A stretch of DNA of 64,000 nucleotides, taken from contig NW_026930802.1 in NCBI RefSeq assembly GCF_032062105.1, forward strand, positions 1 to 64,000. Direction: 5' to 3'. The notes beneath the pieces are model-generated. The model had not been told where the DNA came from and did not search any database. It saw only the letters and a program-made list of their open reading frames with translations. A program made the position numbers and the translations under genes. Below are positions 21,636 to 62,619 of this stretch, in pieces (within the stretch, counting starts at the first letter, position 1; each line of letters starts with the position of its first letter). Source of the DNA: Saccostrea cucullata (taxonomy: Eukaryota).

Positions 21636-24600
21636 ATGACAATCTTTTGGTGGATCTTGATTTTTGTCTCACAAGCAGTTATTCACTCTTACGGTATAAA
21701 ACTTAAATGTTTAAAATAACTACTTACATGTGTACCGGTATATGAGTTTTTAGAGTAGAAATATTTGAAAATAACGATTAGCATTCAAGGCCTTAAGTCC
21801 AATTTTACAATATAAATTCAAAGTATACACAGGTCTCAAATGGAGGAATAATTATCCCTAGTAAACTGGTAATTTAGTATTTCTTTAAATATGCAGTTAG
21901 AATAAAGTTCATTAAAATACATCTTGGACGTATTTCTTCTAATTAAATACTTCGATGAGATGTACTTTGTTATGGTGGTAGATTTATTTAAGCATTGAGT
22001 GTACAATCATTCTGAAATAGATATTAAGTTGAACGGACTTAGGAAAATCATTTTGTAAGTATTTGCGCATCTCTCGACTTATGCCTTTCAACCACAAGAA
22101 TCGAGTGAAAATGACGTATAATCAAAAGAGAAAAGTTGTATCAGAGAATATGTTAATTTATGTGCCAACGGCTGTATCCTCTTGAAAGGAAAATGTTGAA
22201 GTACTGAAAATCAAAATACTGCATCTTTAGTATACTCTGAGAACAAATATAAGCGTTTTGTTGATTTTATTTTTCCGTTTTGTCCTCTTACCTCAATGCA
22301 ATTGAAATAGAATTTTAATTCAACCGATTTACAGAAAACTATACTTCTTCAGAGAAGAAACTGTGTAGATACGTAATTTTTTTTACATGCATTTACAAAA
22401 TATATTGCATTATGTGAGTTACTCAAAATTTCGTTATTTAAGGACAGATGGTACAAACAAAAAGTTGTCGAAAAAATTTCAAAATAACAAATTGGGTCAT
22501 GTTTGAATGAATTAAACGATTTCGAAAAAAAAGTTTCATCGCGTAGTTTTTTAATTTTTATTCAAAATGTAACAAAAATGGGATTTGAAGTTTAAAAAGT
22601 TTTGTATAGATTAATAAGGATGGTTTTAGAAGCGCAGAGTTTGAACATCACAGAAGGTTTACAATTTCTTTATGTTCTATAAATCTATGTATTATTTACT
22701 TCTTTGGCAATAAAATTCGGTAAAAAAAAATATACCAATCAAGGCATCCATTTTTCTTGTTGAATCATCTGTCCTTAAAATAATACATTGTCTTCTCTAT
22801 TCAAGCATCATGTCATTATATCAAGTATGGTAGATACGAAGAACCATTGAAAATATGGGGAACGCAAAAATAAGTTCTATATATTCGTATGACCGCCATT
22901 TACACCGATGCGTTCTTTACACCTACAACACATTGAAATCTTCAGGTAAAAGATTAATCTATCATCATAGTATTTTATGATTCCAAACTGCTATTTTTCC
23001 TGTTTAAAGTTTGAAGATACTTAAGTCAACCGAGACAAATATTGCAAATTTTATATATAGATGAAAGTTTGTTTATTTATCCTAACAAGGATTTATTTCG
23101 AAGATGCACAATATATTGTAAACAGCATTTATTTGAAGAAATCAAATTAAACTTGTTTTAACTGAACACACAAATTCTATTATTACCTTATAATTTTTAG
23201 TTTACCTGAGCCAAAGGCTCAAGTGAGCTTTTCCGCGCACATTTTGACCGTCGTCTTTCTGTCCGTCTGTAAACTTTCCGCATTATCGAGTTCTTCTCAA
23301 GAACTACTAGGCAAAGTTTAACCAAACTTGGTACAAAGCATTCTTGGGTGAAGGGGAGTTAAAAGTATTAAACTGGATGACCCAGTTTTTTTACAAGGGG
23401 AGATAATCAAGTAAAAAGAAAATAGGGATGGGTAATTAAAAAAATCTTCTAAAAAGCGCGCAACAATTTGGAATCCAAGTTTTACGTCGAACTATCTAGC
23501 AAAAAAAATTTAAAAAATATTTTCCTCAAGAACGACTGGGCCAGAAAAGTTTAAACTTATGTGGAAGAAGGAGATAACGAACAGTATTCAATCTCAAAGA
23601 CCATAACACAATAGAAAATAGGAGCAGAGCAAACACGGACCTTAGAAATATCAGATGTGGGATCAGGTGCCATGGAGGAGTGAGCATCCGTAGTGTAGAT
23701 TCTAAATTGTTCAAATCATGACCCCGGGGTTATGGTGTGGCTGCAATTGGGAATCCAAGTTTAACACAGAAATATATAAAATATCTTGAAAAATTTTCCG
23801 AGAGCTATTTGGCCAGAAAAGCTGAAACGTATGAAAAAGTATTGTTGGGTAGTGTAGAATTTCAACTGTCCAAGTTATGACCCCCGGGGGTAGAGTTGGG
23901 TCACTTAAGGTATAACAAGGAGAAATTCTGGTAAAGATCAGCATGTTCAAAGCTACTACGGTGAGTAAGTAATTACTGTACTTTGCTTATTCTTTTTTTC
24001 ATGAAGACATCTAAAATCAGTTTAACCTTTTCATTGTTATACAGATAACATATGTGAAAGGACTACTTGTACAGCAACACAGAGCTCGGTTAGATTTGGT
24101 TTATCTGCAGATAAGGTGATCGACGGAAATATCAAACAAAATTACAGGAATTGTTCACATACTGAAATGCGGAAATCAGTGGCATGGGTAATGGTGGACT
24201 TTCAAAAAGCAATCAAACTAAAAAACGTCGTTATATATTACAGAAATGAAGGTAAAATGTTTTTATTTGACTTTTTGAGATTTTCAATGGCTTGTTATTA
24301 CCTACGTTATGATAAATGCAGTAGTGAAACATCTACAAAGGAAATAAATTCCTTTAATCTACCTTTAATACTGAACGTTTGATTGATGTTAAACGCCCCT
24401 CTAGAGAATTTTTCACTTATACGGACATTTACCGGTGGGGGGCTGCAAATTTATATACTCGGTTCTTAGGGCCATTGTGCAGTTTGGACTTTTTTTTCGT
24501 GCCAACAATTACTGTGACATGAGACCGCGTCACGGGGCGACCTTATCCGGGGGACCGATCTCCTCGTCCTACAGTTGATTTGAACCTGCGACGTAAGGAT

Positions 24601-51170: not shown

Positions 51171-53804
51171 TTCATTCGGTTGGTTTGAAGGTACAGTTTC
51201 ATCATGTAACTTTAATTCTAAAAGAATAATATACCAAACGCATTTCAATTAACAGATAACATATGCGAAACAACTTCCTGTACAGCAACACAGAGTTCAA
51301 CAATGGATTGTCTAGAAGCAGATAGAGTGATTGACGGAAAAGTCTACCAAAATGATCGAAATTGTTCACATACGGCTTTAAACAAATCGGTTGCATGGTT
51401 GATGGTGGACTTTGGCAAAGAATTTCAGATGAAAAATGTTGTAATCTAATACAGGGATGAACGTAAAAGTATGTATTTCTTTGAGCTTGTTTATCTAAAA
51501 CACATTGTACGAGTACAGTTTTGGTTTTTAAAATTTTACTTAAAAATTTCAAAAATATCAGTTCCAAACTTGGTTTTATTTTTGGAACTTTGTTAAAAAA
51601 TCTTTTGGTTAAGCAAAGAAAAAAAACATTTTAGATTAAATGTTTTAGATATTTGAAGTAAAATTCTTAAAAGTTAAAGAATTTTGGTTTTTGAAATTTG
51701 AATGTTTAAATCAAAATTCTTATTAATTCTAAAAAATCAGAAACGTTTTGAAAGTTGAAATTTAGAAGTTTGAAGTAAATTTTAAATATAAGAATTCGGG
51801 AACTGGTACTGAACTTTAGATTGTTATGTGTAACCTTTCTAAACCATTGAGAGATTGAAAATTCAAAGTTTGAATAACCCATTTTTGAAAATTTGAACTC
51901 TGAGTATTTTAAATAAAGAAAAATAAAAATTTATACATTTTTGACGTGTTAAGATATTTGAAAATTTAAATTTTTGATCCAAAATGTTTAATATCAATAA
52001 ACGAAATTAGTTTTAGTTTTTGAAGTTTAGAAATGTGGACTAAAGTATTTGATTTGTGAAACTAAATCAAAACTAAATTGTAGAAATTTGAATTGATAGG
52101 TGTTATATTACGCGGACACAATCCAAGTAAAATACAGAGTAAAATTTAGATAACTAATTTATTTCTGAAATATTTATGATATTAATCAATTCTTCACTTT
52201 GTGGAACAACTGAAAATAAAAAAAAAATCCAGTATGTTATGCTTTACAGAAAAATCTCCTTTTAACTGGAAACCGTTCTGATTCCGAAAATACAGATTAG
52301 AGATATCTAATTACTCGAATACACAAAAGTGGATGATTTATTACAAAGGTTACACATCATACCCTGTTGTGTCTCCAAGTATACAGACTATTTCATGTGA
52401 GAGAAAAGCCAGATACATAAGAATAATTACAACGTATGATGCTCCAGAAGATAAGCCAATCATGGGCGCTGTACTTGAAACATGTGAAATTTAAGTTTAT
52501 GGTAAGAACAATTTCTTATATTCGTCAATTTAAAAAGCTATATGTATGTTATTCATGACTATTATTTATATATAAGCATCAAAGTTTTTGGAATACTTTT
52601 CCTTTTGACAAACTAAGAATAATTTTAATTTCATTCAGACCTGCGTACCCTTCCGCTTTTGGTGTAATTCTTCCGCTTTTTAACAAAAAATTAAGCTATT
52701 GCGTGAAGAAAATCAATTTCATGCAATGAGATACCTGCCTACTTAATGAAATATTATTTTTGGGGTTAAAGTAATGTGTTTTTTGATGAATACAAGAAAT
52801 AGCTATTTTTGGAGGGTTTCGGTTCTTCATAATATAATTGATAACGACACAAACAACATAAGTAGTATAGTGACATCTACAATGTGACGTCAATTAATAT
52901 TTAAGTCCTTTAATATCAAAACAACATGGAGAAAGTAATTCGGTTAAAATTAATATATATTTGTGAGCGTCAATGTTCCTTTGATTTCTTCATTTCGCCT
53001 TAACAGTACTGCTGTTTTTTGCAGGATGTGATTTAAATCATTACGAACAAAATTGCTCCCAGGAATGTAGTGCAAACTGTGTTTTGCAGGCGTGTAACAT
53101 CTTCACTGGTTTTTGCACTTATGGATATAAAAACGAATTCTATTCATCAAAGTGTGATAAGACATGCAGCCTAAATTGTACAAATGGATGCGATAGAATC
53201 AATGGTTTATGGAATTCTGAATGCATTTTTGGAAAATTTGGCGCTGATTGTCTCAAGACCTGTGGCGCTGAGTGTATTTCCGGTTGCAATCAATCCGATG
53301 GGAGCTGTACTTGTAAAACAGGATGGCAGGGACGTAATTGCGATGGTAAAACCACTAAATAATAAAACTAACACTACAAAAATTCTAGAATAGGACATCT
53401 TTGAATAGTCATTATTAGTTATATAAAAATGAGTTCATTTAAATCTTACACATACATTTTAACACTTGATGAGAATAGGATGACTTCTGATCGATTGCTA
53501 CACATATTTTCAGCATTTCAAAATTTAGTTCAATAAAATTTTTAGTATCATATTAAACTAAAATTTCACTTTCATACAATCAACTATACCTTTAGGATAA
53601 CACAATGATTTACTGTTCAATCTTCACTTCCCTTACTTATACAGCAGTATGACTTCATAACCTGCCTGCGGGGTATATACCTCTTAGTTGATTCGATAGA
53701 CAAGCTCAGGTTCTACGTACATAACATTTCTTAAAACGAGGTCAGTTTTTCAAAAACAGGTTGGTAAACGAGAATATTGGCAGTTTAAGGTCACAAGTTT
53801 TATA

Positions 53805-55450
53805 CCCTAACAAAAAATACTATAGTAAACTATAGTTAAGTAAAGTCTACTATACTTAAGTATAGTAAATCAAAGTTCCAAAGTTTTCACCATAGCAAAT
53901 CAAAGTTCCAAAGTTTTCTCCATAGTAAATCAAAGTTCCAAAGTTTTAACTATAGTAAATCAAAGTTCCAAAGTTTTCACTATAGTAAATCAAAGTTTCA
54001 AAGCTTTTGCCATTATAGTAAATCAAAGTTCCAAAGTTTTTACTATATTTAATCAAAGTTCCAAAGTTTTCACCAAAGTAAATCAAAGTTGCAAAGTTTA
54101 TACCATAGTTTTTCTAAGTTCCAGAGTTTTTATTATAGTAAATCAAAGTTTTAATTTTTTTGTTATAAAAGTTCTGCGGTGAAAGATATATTATACGATA
54201 ATACTTTCCACGCCCCTTCATATATCACTGCAGGAGGAAGAATCAGGTCATGAGAAAAAAAACTGATTTTATTTCACAAGTTCATAACCACAGAAAAATG
54301 AACATGTATAGCTATTTCTTAGCCGTTAACTAAATTAAAATACATGTATTTAACTCGGTTGAAAGTTCCCAAAGTTTTTCCATTTTGAAAATTTGAAAGT
54401 TACGGTAAAATCTAACTTTTTATCGTTAAACTCCTTGCTATTTGTTTCTGTGAATTTTTTTGTTATATGAATCTTTTTTTTACTTTGACACTCTCAATGA
54501 AATTTACGTCATCAACTTATAGTATTGGTTAGTTAAATCCACGCCCCATGAAAGTTTTTCTTCTATGATGTAACCTATACAACTTATACAGTTAAATTAA
54601 GTTTTTCTTATCATTTAACTTTTTTTAGTTGAATGATATTTGGTTTGTTGGGGCTGTTTTTTGTTGTTCATCTTAATTTTGATATGCAAAGTAATTAATT
54701 TAAATGCAATGTTTACATTTAACAGTGGAAAAAAAAGTGTTGACTGAAGCTTATGAAGGAATTTTTTTTTTTTATTCTTAATGACGCATATTATATCTTA
54801 TAGTAATATTTTCTCCATATATGACTTACATTTTATCGGCACAACATTAAAATTAAATACATTTAAATAAATATTGCTAATTTGTTGGTGCAAGAGACAA
54901 TTTTTACCTTAAAATTCAATACCTGTACACTATTCTTCTAAGAGAAGGGTCTTTTTTTTTTAAGTTCTCTGAAGCTTTTATGAATCTTAACCTTGAAATT
55001 TCAGAAAATGTACAGAATCGGAAAAAAGAACATAATTCCACTGGTTTTTTAGTACTCGATCAAAGTTTCAAAGTTTTCATCATAGTAAATCAAAATTCCA
55101 AAGTTTTCACAATGGTAAATCAAAGTTCCAAAGTTTGCACTACAGTAAATCAAAATTCCAAAGTTTTTATCATAGTAAATCACAGTTCCAAAGTTTTTAC
55201 GATAGTAAATCAAAGTTCCAAAGCTTTCACTATAGTAAATCAAAGATTTAAAGTTTTTACTAAAGTAAATCAAAGTTCCAAATTTTCTCCATAGTAAATA
55301 AAAGTTCCAAAGTTTTTACTATAATAGTAAATCAAAGTTCCAAAGTTTTCACCATAGTAAATCAAAGTTCCAAAGTTTTAACTTTGGTACTATAGTTAAC
55401 TATAGTAAACTATAATTAACTAAAGTTTACTATGGTATTTTTTGTTAGGG
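53805..55450. mobile_element. TIR element with internal 30-bp tandem arrays (ATAGTAAATCAAAGTTCCAAAGTTTTCACT)
   Basis: ta|CCCTAACAAAAAATAC ... GTATTTTTTGTTAGGG|ta; arrays at ~53860-54150 and ~55055-55385. Confidence 0.8.
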
Positions 55451-55660
55451 TATTTATATCCACTGAATATTTTCTCCTTTATTTGTTAAGAAAACCCATA
55501 GCCATTATTCAGTGCATGAACAACACTAGGCACATATATAACCTGTTCTGATTTCTTGATCAGTTCCATCAATGAAACGTACAAAGACGGACGTATCATT
55601 AATACAATAATTAATGTTTTTAATCCTACATTAAAAAATTAATTAAACAGGCATACATAT

Positions 55661-55823
55661 AAACAATAAAATGTCTTTCTTTGGTTGTTAGTACGGGAGT
55701 GAATGTTGCAGATATCGCAGAAAAAATTACATAACCCGCTTACGCAGGCTATGTATTTTTTTTCTGCAACAGCTGCTGTATTCATTCCCGTACTAACAAT
55801 AAAAAAAAAACATTTTATTGTTT
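55661..55823. repeat. Imperfect palindromic element
   Basis: aaacaataaaatgt..ttgttagtacggga..gcagaaaaaattacata / tatgtattttttttctgc..tcccgtactaacaa..acattttattgttt. Confidence 0.75.
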
Positions 55824-58800
55824 AATTAAGTTTTATGGTCGATACATCGTCCCTGTCAGTATATACAATTTATCATTAAGTGAAAAGCTGAATGACGCTT
55901 TGATACTTATTGATAGTCCATTATTTAGACACCTATTTGTTGACGATTTTTTTTCTTTATTTCCCGATCATGACAAGGAGCACACGGCGGGTATGACTGG
56001 TTAGCATGGGATGCACACTCATTCATGGTAACTGATCCCACCTCTGATGTTTTGGAAGTCCGTGTATGCTGAGCTATTTTTTGATGGACTTTTGAGCTTG
56101 AATACTGTTCATTATCTCTATATAATTTAAACATGCATTACTTATACGTCATACCAAAAAAAAAATCATTAACTGGTAAATTTGGTTAAACTTTACAATA
56201 GCATCTAAGGCAAAGAGGCAAACAACCACTAAAAATTTTCAGTGTTATTGAAAATAATAACAACACTATCTATTCGATTGTCACATTCGAGGATTCCTGA
56301 ATAATAACTACCCCCTCGTACGATTGAGAGGAGAACAATAGGGGTGTAAATACTATTGATTTTAATAATATTGTCATTCATTTCTTTCAATTCTAAATTT
56401 TAAAATTGAAAAGCTTTGATAATAATATGGTAGAAAAACAACTAAGAGATACACAAAAACCAGTCACATGTAGCAAAACAGAAATGTTATTTGTCTGTAC
56501 ATGTGTATACCAATGGAGAAAATTTATAAAAACACATATTTATTTTTAGAAAATTCAAAATAACTCTCGTCTTTTTATCTTTTTATAGAAAGCAGTCAAA
56601 CTCATTACGGACAACGGTGTAATAAACTTTGCAGTCTAATCTGTCTGAATGGAGTTTGTTTTTCAAACAATGGTTCCTGTAAAGAGGGTTGCGATATTAA
56701 CCTCTATGAAACTAATCGCTTGCATGGTAAAACACATTTTTGACATTTTAGCGAAAAGAAAAAAAACTACAACAAATAATCATCATATCAGATTTTTTTT
56801 TATTAATAGTTGTATATCCCTTTTCTTTTTCATTAGAATCAAATAGTTTTTCAAACACAGAGTCAGCTCTATATGGAGTCGCCACAGTTTTTCAGTCTGG
56901 TAAGTTTTCATTAAAAATAGATCTCATTTACATGTACACTGTAAATAGGAAACTCATTCTTAGAATAAAATAGAAAGAGAAATGGATGGGATTTCTACCT
57001 ATATTTTCCCTAAAAAAGTTTTTCTGTGCATGTTTTTTTTTCATTATAAAACAGGAAAGTAAGACAAACAATTGGTCAAAGAAAAGACTCCCAAAAGCAA
57101 CGCAACCTCTATTACTCATCGAGCAACGAAGATACAGCAGCTGTAAATGAAGCTTCGGAAGAAAACGCAGGTAACCAGGGACGTGGACAATTAAGCCAAA
57201 CCGCGCATTACGATGAACTCAAGTGATTTTGGGCTTGAATTGTAATCGGTTTTCAAGTTTAATTAAAGGAGTTTTTAGTAAACTGAAAAAATGCATATTT
57301 TGATAGCTTACATATCATATTGCTTATACATGGTACATTGTATTATCGTGAGTACTTTCAGAGAACAAAGTTAATTTGTTTTATTTGTTTACTTATTTTT
57401 TTCTATTTCGTTTTTCTAATAAAACATTTTCATTTGCTTTCCTTTAGATTTAAGAGTGTGTGATGAAATGTAGGAATAAAATTATAATTTCAAAGAGAAT
57501 TAGAGGATATAAACATGTCTAATCCGGCTTTTTTTTAATCAAGAGATCCATTGCTATAGAAACAAACACCCAAAAGGAAGGACATTCAATAAAAAAAAAC
57601 TTATTTAAAATTTCATTTTAAAATCTAGCAAGTTTTCTGATGCCCTTCGTTGTTATCATGTACGTACAATAATGCTTGAAATAAATATATAAAATAAAGA
57701 ATTTCTTTTTTAAGAAAAGGAAGTTTACAGAGCTTAGAATTACTCTTTACTCGCCAGAAATCAGGTATTGTGAACTCCTTGTTATCTCCTCACAAAAAAG
57801 CAAGAAAGCAAACAAGGAAATATTTTATGATTCTATAACTGTGAGACGATTTGCTATCATTCAATGTTTTTGGGGTTCTCTAAAGACGAGCATAATAAAG
57901 TGCAATATGCACAAACACTATGATATGTATTAAGGTATTCTATGTATGACACACTACAGTATCCTTACCAAAAGCAGAATTGTATAAAGTGATTAACATA
58001 ATGTTTACAGAAATTCCTAAGAAAGGAATGTGTTCCATGAAACAATCAGAAATCAATCTTGTTATGAGCATCGCAAAATTGAGAATAAATCGAACATGGG
58101 ACCCCTAGAAACACAACGCGTTTGTCAGATACATACATGTAGAAGGAGCAATCATCCTTCCTTGAAAGTTTATATCCATTGTCACCCATCTGTTTTGATC
58201 AATTAGGTGAACAATCCATAATCAAAATAATCGAAAATTATTGTATTTGAATAACATACAATATAATTTAAGACTTGTTTTATGTGTCGAAATAAACCGT
58301 AGTTTTATGAAAAGAGTGTCAAATCACGAATTATTCCGGTTAGGTTATTAAATCGTAAAATAAAATAATTTAACTTTCGTTGGTAAAGGAATGTAAATGG
58401 ATGTTTAAAAACGAATCGTGGTCAAGCCAGAAGTCACAGTACTGTTTATTTGAATGTGGAAATTATCCGTAGGTGTTAGAAATCTAGTAGTAACTTCCAA
58501 CAGTTAGTTTTATAAAAAAGAAGACAGGATTCCTTAAACATTGCATTAAAAGACAGATTATGCCATTATTCTCTCGAATAGCAGATGTAAAATTTTAACA
58601 GCAGCGGAAGTTTCATATCTTTTTTTATCGTTACATGATGTTGTAATTAGGGAAGGACCAACCAGAAAGATAGACGTGAGTGTATGTTTCAGTTTATGAA
58701 ACCTACTCGATCTCTTTAAATAAGTATCATCTCTTCAAACAAAATGTGGTAATTCTACAACGAACATCAATTTCTATTCGTGTAATCAAGAACTGCGTAA

Positions 58801-59803
58801 TATATTAATCTTGACCGACAACAAGATTAGTCATTTTTAAGTAGATGACAATTCTTGAAGCAATATATGGCGTATCTGAGCTAAAATAAATATGAGATTG
58901 AATGTAGATTTACATGATATTTGTTATGTACAATGTACGTTCAAATTTATTTTGAACTAAAGTATAATCACATTTCTATTGACTTTAAACTGTGTCTGCT
59001 ATTTAATTCCGAGTTGGAAATAAATCGGTTATTGTTTTAAATATTTGAAATCTATGAAATAAAATTGATTAAAATTGTGTAATAATTTACAGGAAAGTCC
59101 CGTCTTTATATAAAGAAACAAAACAAATGGAAATATCTATTTGATTTTATTTTGCCTGAACTTGTCAAAAATACGCCGCATATGACTTTATGATTTGTAT
59201 ATTTTATCTTTATTTTTATAATTCTTTATGGAAACACTTAAAACACTTGTATGAATAAACATTTATTTTCCTTGCAGGTCGCTAATTGTAACTGTAGAAA
59301 ATGAATCATATCTAAATCATCTTTTATATACATGTAATTGATAATGGATTTTACATGTAGGAAAAATAAGGGGGGAAATTAAAATGAGATATTTTCATCA
59401 TTGGACATCGTCATGTAAACCTGTGTGTACTTTTATCAATTGATGCGTATATGACATTCTTGAGACTTTTATCATGTATCTGCGTATTTCTTTTTATTCT
59501 TTACCTGAATACCTCAATTGTACCTAAGTTATGCCCTTTAGCTGCTATCACTTATAAAACATCAAAACCACTGTTTTCAAATATATTGAAAATCAAATCA
59601 AGATTTCAACCTTAAACAGGCCTTTATACATCTTTTTAAAGTAACACAAATTTTCTTTAGGACCGGCGTATATGCGAAAATCGGAGTGGCTACTTTAAGA
59701 TACACACTTGACAATCAAGGTTTATAACGCAGTGTAATTCTTAATTCTGTAAAGAAAAGGAAAAAAAAATAAGGGTATATCTTATTTTATTTCCTTATTT
59801 GAG

Positions 59804-62619
59804 ATGGCTGACCTGTGTGCAATGTTGGTTGTTTTATTGCTAGGAACTTTCCATTGTTACGGTAAGTAACTCTTCTATTTAAAAATTTTTTGCTCTGAAT
59901 TGTATTTTTAATATTTCAATTCATTGTTCCATTGATTTCACTTATTCAAAAAAAAAATGTTTAGAGAATGAAGCTTTTACTGAATGGCAAATTTATTCAT
60001 ATTACCTTTGGTAACAATAGATTCATTATCTGAAAATTTTGGAAATTAACATACATGCTTATTGATTAGTTTTTATAAGCATAATAATCGTTGCCATATT
60101 TGCCTTTTCAGTATTACTGCAAACATTTTCTATGACAAAATTTCATTTTAAAGGTATTAAAGAAACAATAATATTTTTAAATCATAAATTCATAAGATCG
60201 ATGTATTAACTGATGAAGAATATATAAATAAATTGATATTAGATTTTAAGTAAATAAGGGCACTGCAGGAGGAACGTCCCCTCATAGCATTTGACATCGA
60301 TTGCAATGGAAATTATGTTACTTCCGTTTTGCACATATTTAAGTTACTCACCCACAAACGAGCATATATGACTGCGTTACTGTATCCCATCTTTAAAAAG
60401 ATACCTAATGAATAACTACACAGTCACTTGAATTTGAACAAGTGTAGAAAATTTAAGCAAATTTTATTACATTCATTTATTATCTAATCGATATAATGTA
60501 ATGTGATTACATGAAATGTAATTGAAATATCATATTTAAAATATCATTAAAACAGGGAGTATCTTTATTTAGACTTGGTCATATGCAGTCCTAATTGTGT
60601 AGATATGCTTTTCGATCGGGAAGGAAAATGCATTCGAGGATGTAATCGGGGATATTGGGGAGACAAATGCGAGAAGAACTGTCCATCGACGTGTTCCGTG
60701 AGAGGCTGCAATAGAGCTAACGGATTCTGCAATTGTTGCATCGACGGTCACTATGGAGATAAATGTGAAAAGAGTTGTTATTTGAGTTGTTCTGGACGAA
60801 GTTGCAACAAAGACACGGGCGACTGTACAAATGGATGTGTGGCAGGAAAATACGGATCTAACTGCCAATTCAGCTGTGGTAAATGCAGCACTGGAAAATG
60901 TGAAAGAAATACTGGATATTGTGAAAACTGTGAAACAGGCTACTTCGGCCGAAAATGTGAAAGAAAATGTAGCGAAAATTGCCTCAATCAGGAATGTGGA
61001 AAAATGGATGGACACTGTAATAATGGTTGCTACAAGGGTTTTTATGGTTTTTTATGTAATATGTCATGCAGAGAAAATTGTGTACAAACAAAGTGCATCC
61101 AAAATAATGTTTGCATTTACGGATGTAAAACAGACATGGCAGGAAATGAATGCAATAGTAAGTTTTTGAAATAAACTTTTTTTTAAATTTATAAATTAAA
61201 TGTTCATTGCATTATACAACAAGCAAATGATCTTACAAAATGGTATATCATATTTTGGTTAATTCAGATATATTTTTCACCATTTATCGTAATTCAGTTG
61301 TAGAAAATATACAATTTGTTTAAGTTTTCCTATGAATATTTAAAACCTTTAGCTACTCATATTTTTAAGGTTATGTAACCATGTTTACGAACAAATAATT
61401 TTTAAATTTTTAATTTTTCTCCAGGCAAAAGCCTGCGATATTAGTTATCTGTTTTCACGCAATGATATCAGTATTTTACTAGAGATTTAAAACAAATTTG
61501 GATATTTGGTTTATAGAATAAAATGTGGAAGGAAAATTTACCTTTCAGGAGATACATAAAGTTCAAAGTTTAAAAGGATCGATACACACTATGGTCTAAA
61601 GAAAGTACTTTTTTTCCTTCTACATTTTTAAAACAACATACAAGCACACAAAATTACTCTGATTACTGTGAATGTATAAAAGGAAGTTGAATTTTAAATA
61701 GAAACTGGCAATTCGCTTTCCTCTTTAAAAAAGTATAAAAAATAATTTTTTTTTCGTTCATTTGTTTCTCTTATTTAGATAGGTCCTGTATTCCAAACAA
61801 TGGGTCGTGTATGGATCGCGTCAAACAAAACACTTACGTTCATGATGGCAAACAAAGTTCAGGTAAAGAGGCTTTATATTAAAAAAAAATATCTGCAGGA
61901 AAAAGTTTACTGGTAACACCAGAGATATTAGATTAAGCTTTATAGACACAAGTATCAGCAGGAAATCTAAATTATGAGTTCTGTCAGATAATTTCAGATT
62001 TAAAAGATTTCTTTTTTTAGAAATTTGAAGACAAATTAAAATGCCAATATCTGTCAAAGAGCAGTATACGAAATGTTTTTAGATATTATAATTTCTGTGG
62101 AGTGATAAAAGGGTTGACAAAATCATGATTAATTAATCTAAGCATTAAAATAAAAGAAAATGTATCTTAACTTGTTTTTACTTCCAACACAAACGTTTTC
62201 CTTTCTATTAAAGTAATCAACGTGGCATCGAAGAAGTTTGCAGTCAAAGTTTTGTTCGGAATCATTGCCATTATCATTACCTTAATATTGCTTAGTGTAT
62301 TTCTTATTGTAAGGTGAGTAGAATTTCAGTTTATTATTAAAGTACATTGTATTGTAGGTACCATAAAAATAAATAATAAAAAGCAGAAAAAGAACATTTA
62401 CGTAGGTTTCCAAGTATTGTTTGATTTTCTAATCAGTAGTTAATCAGCAATTTCTGTCTTTTAGTGGTACGTTTATTTTTTAGGAAAGTCAGACAAAGGA
62501 GGAACCAGATTTTAACCAGAGGGGCAAACGCAGAAGTGACAGACAAAGTGGAAAACATCGCAGGCTACCAAGAACTAGGACAATTAAGTCAACCCTCCCA
62601 TTATGAAAAACTCAAATGA
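59804..62619 (+). CDS. Gene E: short type I receptor, signal peptide + EGF repeats + TM + ITAM-like tail (about 320 aa)
   Basis: Exons 59804-59861 (MADLCAMLVVLLLGTFHCY), 60573-61157 (585 nt EGF), 61779-61862 (half-EGF stalk), 62214-62313 (TM VLFGIIAIIITLILLSVFLIV), 62484-62619 (..AGYQELGQLSQPSHYEKLK*); open frame. Confidence 0.82.

Follow-up and report, generated by a model that had tools for sequence, protein, structure and literature searches.

An expanded family of oyster receptors with ITAM-consensus tails shares lectin and EGF ectodomains with a phosphatase-tailed sister class

Receptors bearing an ITAM (immunoreceptor tyrosine-based activation motif) are already known from invertebrates—among them Draper, the oyster receptor CgIgR with its kinase CgSyk, and the Alr proteins of Hydractinia—and three combinations of ectodomain and tail have been described from resistance regions of the snail Biomphalaria. 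Here, we compare with these systems a gene cluster from the oyster Saccostrea cucullata, at positions 21,636 to 62,619 of a 64,000-nucleotide stretch (contig NW_026930802.1 of assembly GCF_032062105.1, positions 1 to 64,000; hereafter, the window). Judged by sequence, three of its genes—B, C and E—belong to an oyster family of single-pass receptors that has expanded and that carries a C-terminal ITAM-consensus motif; D, the fourth tandem copy, is a pseudogene.

The SCARF-like LG5R/SudRes1 family of Biomphalaria also consists of clustered single-pass genes, which take three forms: 1A has epidermal growth factor (EGF) repeats only, like C and E; 1B joins a fucolectin/galactose-binding domain to EGF repeats and a short tail, like B; and 1C sets two protein tyrosine phosphatase (PTP) domains behind the 1B ectodomain, like a sister class in the oyster. 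Compared at the level of architecture, the oyster genes share the full snail layout (signal peptide, optional galactose-binding domain or fucolectin, MEGF, one transmembrane segment, and either a short tail or tandem PTP). Unlike the oyster tails, the short snail tails are reported as ‘without identifiable domain signatures’, and the term ITAM has no occurrence in either main text. A preliminary description of the window had left it to the literature whether the family was already described: its ectodomain architecture has been, in Biomphalaria, whereas we found no published report of an ITAM or of ITAM/phosphatase pairing in this family in a literature coverage that misses many journals.

Draper, MEGF10 and CED-1 (PMC8092387) are likewise EGF-repeat type I receptors whose ITAM is read by Shark or Syk, but they are invariant, low-copy proteins with an EMI domain and NPxY, whereas the oyster family has a short tail, an optional F-type-fold lectin domain and dozens of paralogues. 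Orthology to Draper/MEGF10 was rejected on the lack of both marks: Pfam scans of the RefSeq protein of gene B (P0002) and of the exons gave no EMI match, and NPxY occurs in one of 58 tails and in none within the window. In Magallana gigas, Syk binds an ITAM-bearing immunoglobulin (Ig) receptor, the tail of CgIgR recruiting CgSyk with ensuing ERK activation and phagocytosis (PMC6994640); that receptor, however, is a single one with five Ig domains, its ectodomain is unrelated and no expanded family has been described. Hydractinia Alr (PMC9546547) and Botryllus FcoR (PMC12065747) do form expanded clusters with pseudogenes and with activating versus inhibitory tails, but they are Ig-based and inhibit through an ITIM (immunoreceptor tyrosine-based inhibitory motif) that recruits SHP, not through a phosphatase fused to the same ectodomain.

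Each of B, C and E carries YxxL-x8-YxxL at the end of its tail: the motif lies in frame in a terminal exon with an AG acceptor, at the coordinates given in the preliminary description, and only one residue separates it from the stop. As the cytoplasmic tails of transmembrane proteins, they match the ITAM consensus Yxx[I/L]x6-9Yxx[L/I] (PMC9546547). The cluster comprises the following features.

21636..21693 (+): gene B exon 1, signal peptide; not in RefSeq model P0002
24045..24251 (+): gene B lectin exon 1, with the h2DGx cation motif and, from the triad, the His and the first Arg
25622..25876 (+): gene B lectin exon 2, remainder of the F-type-fold domain
28452..28520, end approximate (+): gene B mini EGF exon, cut short at the edge of a 1.35 kb duplication and without its donor
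32557..33141 (+): gene B large exon of laminin-type EGF repeats
33774..34190 (+): gene B second EGF-repeat exon
35033..35170 (+): gene B EGF exon, membrane-proximal
35491..35602 (+): gene B transmembrane exon, carrying the polar S-x3-N motif of the family
36358..36595 (+): gene B tail exon, with an upstream half-motif at 36479-36490 and the ITAM-consensus motif at 36542-36589
40111..40168 (+): gene C signal-peptide exon, weak donor GTTTAC
40673..42891 (+): gene C EGF exons 40673-41257, 41881-42297 and 42754-42891, without a lectin domain
43246..43345 (+): gene C transmembrane exon, which has lost the polar motif and whose donor is displaced from its usual place in the family
43471..43636 (+): gene C tail exon, ITAM-consensus motif at 43583-43630
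51256..57226 (+): pseudogene D, with stops in the lectin exons, a shortened EGF exon, a truncated transmembrane exon and a tail without the first Tyr
59804..59861 (+): gene E signal-peptide exon
60573..61862 (+): gene E EGF exon 60573-61157 and stub exon 61779-61862, without a lectin domain
62214..62313 (+): gene E transmembrane exon
62484..62619 (+): gene E tail exon, ITAM-consensus motif at 62566-62613

The three open type I proteins proposed earlier differ in how well they hold. Gene E stands in full: its five-exon model, in which the EGF exon directly follows the signal peptide and the tail exon encodes 44 aa, is identical over 320 aa to RefSeq protein P0001, named SCARF1-like. Gene C gives an open predicted model of 487 aa that depends on the weak GTTTAC first donor and the shifted transmembrane donor. 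Gene B, composed of a signal peptide, two lectin exons, three EGF exons, a transmembrane exon and a 78 aa tail exon, gives a 669 aa model that is open only when the mini EGF exon at 28452 is skipped. The final codons and donor of that exon are gone at the border of the 1.35 kb duplication (27101-28446 and 28521-29872, 98.9% identity, including (TA)n), which may be either a true lesion or an assembly artefact. Skipping is plausible because some relatives (P0006, P0054) splice the lectin directly to the large EGF exon; the RefSeq model XP_062567899.1 instead bridges the gap with an additional exon and has no signal-peptide exon. The attribution of lectin/EGF ectodomains to the cluster as a whole likewise holds in part, for B and D: within the window only these two have a lectin domain.

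The tail of gene B has a third box, YQEL, at 36479-36490, the product of an internal duplication in which the second Tyr of the upstream copy is now Phe. The introns of this gene also contain satellite-like tandem repeats of ~166 bp, at 23269-23903 and 30074-31168, one of which follows the 1.35 kb duplication; they resemble the Helitron-associated satellites of oysters.

The motif is a family property. When the tail exon of E was used as a query, 74 matches were found in the assembly; a tail profile gave 127, from which 84 loci on 41 contigs were retained, ten of them on the window’s contig—counts that are inflated by haplotig duplicates. Seventy tails were read, at least 58 of them non-redundant, and the complete YxxL/I-x8-YxxL/I is present in 51/58. 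They follow the consensus YQELGQLSQPSHYDxL, with an acidic run ahead of it and, in 26 tails, a third YxxV/I/L as well. The bare pattern is frequent by chance in six-frame translations of AT-rich DNA (dozens of matches); among shuffled tails, 0.58% hold it and 0.028% hold it with x8 at the C-terminus, against 52/58 and 49/58 of the real tails. Pairwise ratios of nonsynonymous to synonymous divergence (dN/dS) are 0.14-0.20 for the motif, at a synonymous divergence (dS) of ~1, and 0.54-0.66 for the aligned juxtamembrane part. Purifying selection thus acts on both YxxL boxes and on the 8-residue spacer, in keeping with the earlier statement that boxes and spacing are kept while the rest of the tail diverges. 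The corresponding ratio for the transmembrane core (0.21-0.23) is biased because the exons were chosen by a pattern.

Because the initial tails had been picked by tail similarity, the family was resampled through its transmembrane exon, most copies of which share LYxV...LxxSxxxN. All 26 matches have a tail match 0.2-1.3 kb downstream; of the readable tails, 20/21 are intact, three others carry a stop and two were not read. Ectodomains vary across the family, from lectin plus EGF to EGF only, lectin only (L014, P0030) and lectin plus one EGF. The description of the array as rapidly evolving is borne out for birth-and-death and domain shuffling but not for point changes: averaged dN/dS of the EGF exons is 0.28-0.47, and such averaged ratios gave no sign of positive selection on the ectodomains. 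The genes are auto-named MEGF10-like, as foreseen, or SCARF1-like. Comparison of the tail profile with the PDB gave no credible match, and an Atlas search with the transmembrane-tail part returned only generic mollusc MEGF clusters. A search for homologous proteins, restricted by length and word limits to the point of being uninformative on kin, recovered only the window’s own protein.

Evidence from other species extends the family and documents its splicing. A search of 1.84 billion proteins with the lectin exons gave 71 matches, those with names coming from Saccostrea, Magallana, Crassostrea virginica, Pinctada and Argopecten; no snail sequence was among them. Proteins of Magallana gigas and M. 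angulata keep the same motif in nearly the same tail. On an M. gigas chromosome, a 2.3 kb Logan contig joins separate lectin, EGF, transmembrane and tail exons at AG/GT borders, its 5′ part deriving from exons further upstream, while a full-length family member of 588 aa is a contiguous open reading frame on 1.8-2.1 kb contigs from seven runs. These spliced contigs show that the EGF-transmembrane-tail junction is real in homologues of B, C and E.

Several tails depart from the common form. Three (L055, L056 and L068) have two complete motifs in tandem. A subfamily (L046, L053, L057, L061, L063 and L064) carries up to several short tyrosine repeats ahead of the terminal motif and, in the four members where it was found (L046, L053, L057 and L061), has a different transmembrane exon. 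The lectin-EGF receptor P0054 (XP_062607703.1) has a tail unrelated in sequence, yet with three YxxI boxes at x8 spacing, a pattern that suggests selection on the spacing itself.

The lectin domain of gene B is predicted with high confidence (predicted local distance difference test score, pLDDT, 92.9) to adopt an F-type jellyroll fold, a prediction obtained for this gene only. In Foldseek, the top PDB matches of the model are F-type fucose-binding modules, with a TM-score of 0.72-0.78. Like F-type lectins (PMC5712786), it has the h2DGx cation motif (as VIDGN) and keeps His and Arg of the triad; unlike them, it is membrane-bound on an EGF stalk and, in place of the canonical fucose motif HX24RXDX4(R/K), has H-x27-R-x-E-x6-R, a spacing that is longer still in many relatives.

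Many close ectodomain relatives had no tail-profile match, and these disclosed a phosphatase-tailed sister class that the preliminary description had overlooked. ITIM tails on these relatives were rejected, phosphatase-type exons being found instead; the query for these exons was taken from the juxtamembrane part of P0005, a part that runs on into a phosphatase in P0057, the homologue from C. virginica. Assigned by the nearest downstream exon rather than by transcripts, 68 genomic lectin exons lead to an ITAM tail in 21 cases, to a phosphatase-type exon in 22 and to neither within 30 kb in 20, with five ambiguous. Identity to the lectin of B does not separate the two classes (P=0.18), and both are present on three contigs, the window’s among them. 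In a tree of 15 lectin proteins, four of them labelled by locus position and the whole otherwise poorly resolved, monophyly of either class is rejected by the approximately unbiased test (p-AU 6e-7 and 4e-7). Related ectodomains are therefore interleaved across opposing tail classes, as expected of paired receptors, and this points to repeated ectodomain exchange or tail switching, as in the paired receptors of vertebrates. The phosphatase-fused sisters, of which XP_062609057.1 is the nearest to B, probably provide an opposing signal.

One lectin-plus-phosphatase gene lies on the window’s contig, on the opposite strand among ITAM-tailed genes (G000:C12939 ~123500-129750, minus strand). Weaker tail-profile matches cluster on contigs C11818, C14900, C22351, C17283, C8728 and C21855, and on the first two they sit among many phosphatase exons; these clusters are perhaps a second ITAM/PTP receptor family.

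We consider it reasonably probable that these receptors work in innate recognition by ligand clustering, phosphorylation of the two tyrosines by Src and recruitment of Syk or Shark, with the phosphatase-fused sisters in opposition; kinase binding, ligand, cell type, immune role and that opposition are what we infer here. Binding of a glycan or surface ligand to the F-type-fold domain or, in C and E, to the EGF stalk would cluster the receptor, perhaps with help from the polar S-x3-N motif of the transmembrane segment. Both tyrosines, which lie behind the acidic run and often behind a third YxxV, would then be phosphorylated by a Src-family kinase, and the tandem SH2 domains of Syk or Shark would dock, leading to ERK signalling and phagocytosis. 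Sisters with the same ectodomains and phosphatase domains would oppose this signal, making up a birth-and-death paired receptor system most likely serving innate recognition.

Several points weigh against this proposal. Conservation extends to the 8-residue spacer itself (dN/dS 0.24), although a generic ITAM has no need of this; the first box, whose Tyr has Gly ahead of it in 66% of tails, resembles a GYxxL sorting signal; with Ser at -2 in 88%, the last box is also compatible with a relaxed ITIM consensus; and homologues from pearl oyster and scallop have tyrosine-rich tails with other tyrosine spacing. The nearest-exon class assignments and the several tree labels made in that way count on the same side, and the phosphatase receptors could have other substrates.

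Such points open the way to other readings of the tail. LAMP-type sorting signals have the form GYxxPhi, and the boxes might be mainly trafficking signals (YxxPhi, AP-2/AP-3) that take scavenger-type uptake receptors to lysosomes without kinase signalling. The Gly ahead of the first Tyr, the SCARF-like ectodomains and the position of the last box, one residue from the C-terminus in most tails, all fit; yet we think this unlikely, given that both tyrosines are held at a fixed 12-residue distance, that a third Tyr and tandem motif repeats exist and that the sister class bears tyrosine phosphatases. The same distance suits the tandem SH2 domains of Syk-family kinases and so speaks against a phosphotyrosine motif for other SH2 proteins (SHP-2, SHIP, Grb2-type or an oyster-specific reader), perhaps inhibitory or modulatory, as does the presence of a separate phosphatase-bearing class. 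An alternative reader of this kind, to which we give a similarly low likelihood, would accord with the invariant spacer, which suggests a specific partner, and with SxYxxL at the last box, which matches the ITIM definition of PMC9546547.

True ITAM-Syk/Shark signalling could also serve a non-immune end, be it the removal of apoptotic cells, an epithelial response to wounding, adhesion or the recognition of gametes: ITAMs act in corpse clearance by Draper and MEGF10, and sperm bindin is among the oyster F-type lectins. Against this rather improbable assignment stand the high copy number, pseudogenes and shuffled ectodomains typical of pathogen-facing families, and snail counterparts that map to parasite resistance. 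That the motif is a chance match spread by recent duplication is very improbable indeed. In its favour are the shortness of the pattern, its frequency in AT-rich translations and the choice of the first tails by tail similarity, but the protein motif holds while synonymous sites have diverged (dS ~1) and persists in another genus and under transmembrane-exon or lectin-exon sampling; the dN/dS and cross-genus data already contradict this reading.

The family has a bearing beyond this locus. Oyster and snail genomes contain many genes auto-named MEGF10-like or SCARF1-like without known output, and a selectively conserved ITAM gives those with short tails a definite signalling route that is cheap to test. 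The phosphatase-fused sisters suggest that activation is balanced by inhibition without ITIMs. In snails, the same architectures lie under the peaks of genome-wide association studies of schistosome resistance, and in farmed oysters the family supplies candidates for the genetics of disease resistance. More tentatively, and on balance doubtfully, molluscs might possess a paired glycan-receptor system akin to KIR/Ly49. A single diversified pool of lectin/EGF ectodomains would there be coupled either with a Syk-recruiting ITAM or with a tyrosine phosphatase of its own, and the short-tailed genes of the snail resistance loci would be the activating arm of the same system.

Pseudogene D, correctly recognised as such in the preliminary description, has stops at 51447, 52279 and 52492 in its lectin exons, and its final exon is open but lacks the first motif tyrosine. 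Arrays of a 30 bp tandem repeat occur inside and upstream of it, at 53800-55450 and 50463-50740. Upstream of the lectin-less genes C and E, two non-coding stretches (39231-39690 and 57791-58252) are 66% alike, possibly as a shared promoter element. Upstream of the whole cluster, at 14721-16885 (+) and 17566-18315 (-), lie fragments of a THAP plus DDE_Tnp_4 (Harbinger-type) transposase, with an adjacent YqaJ/alkaline-exonuclease open reading frame.

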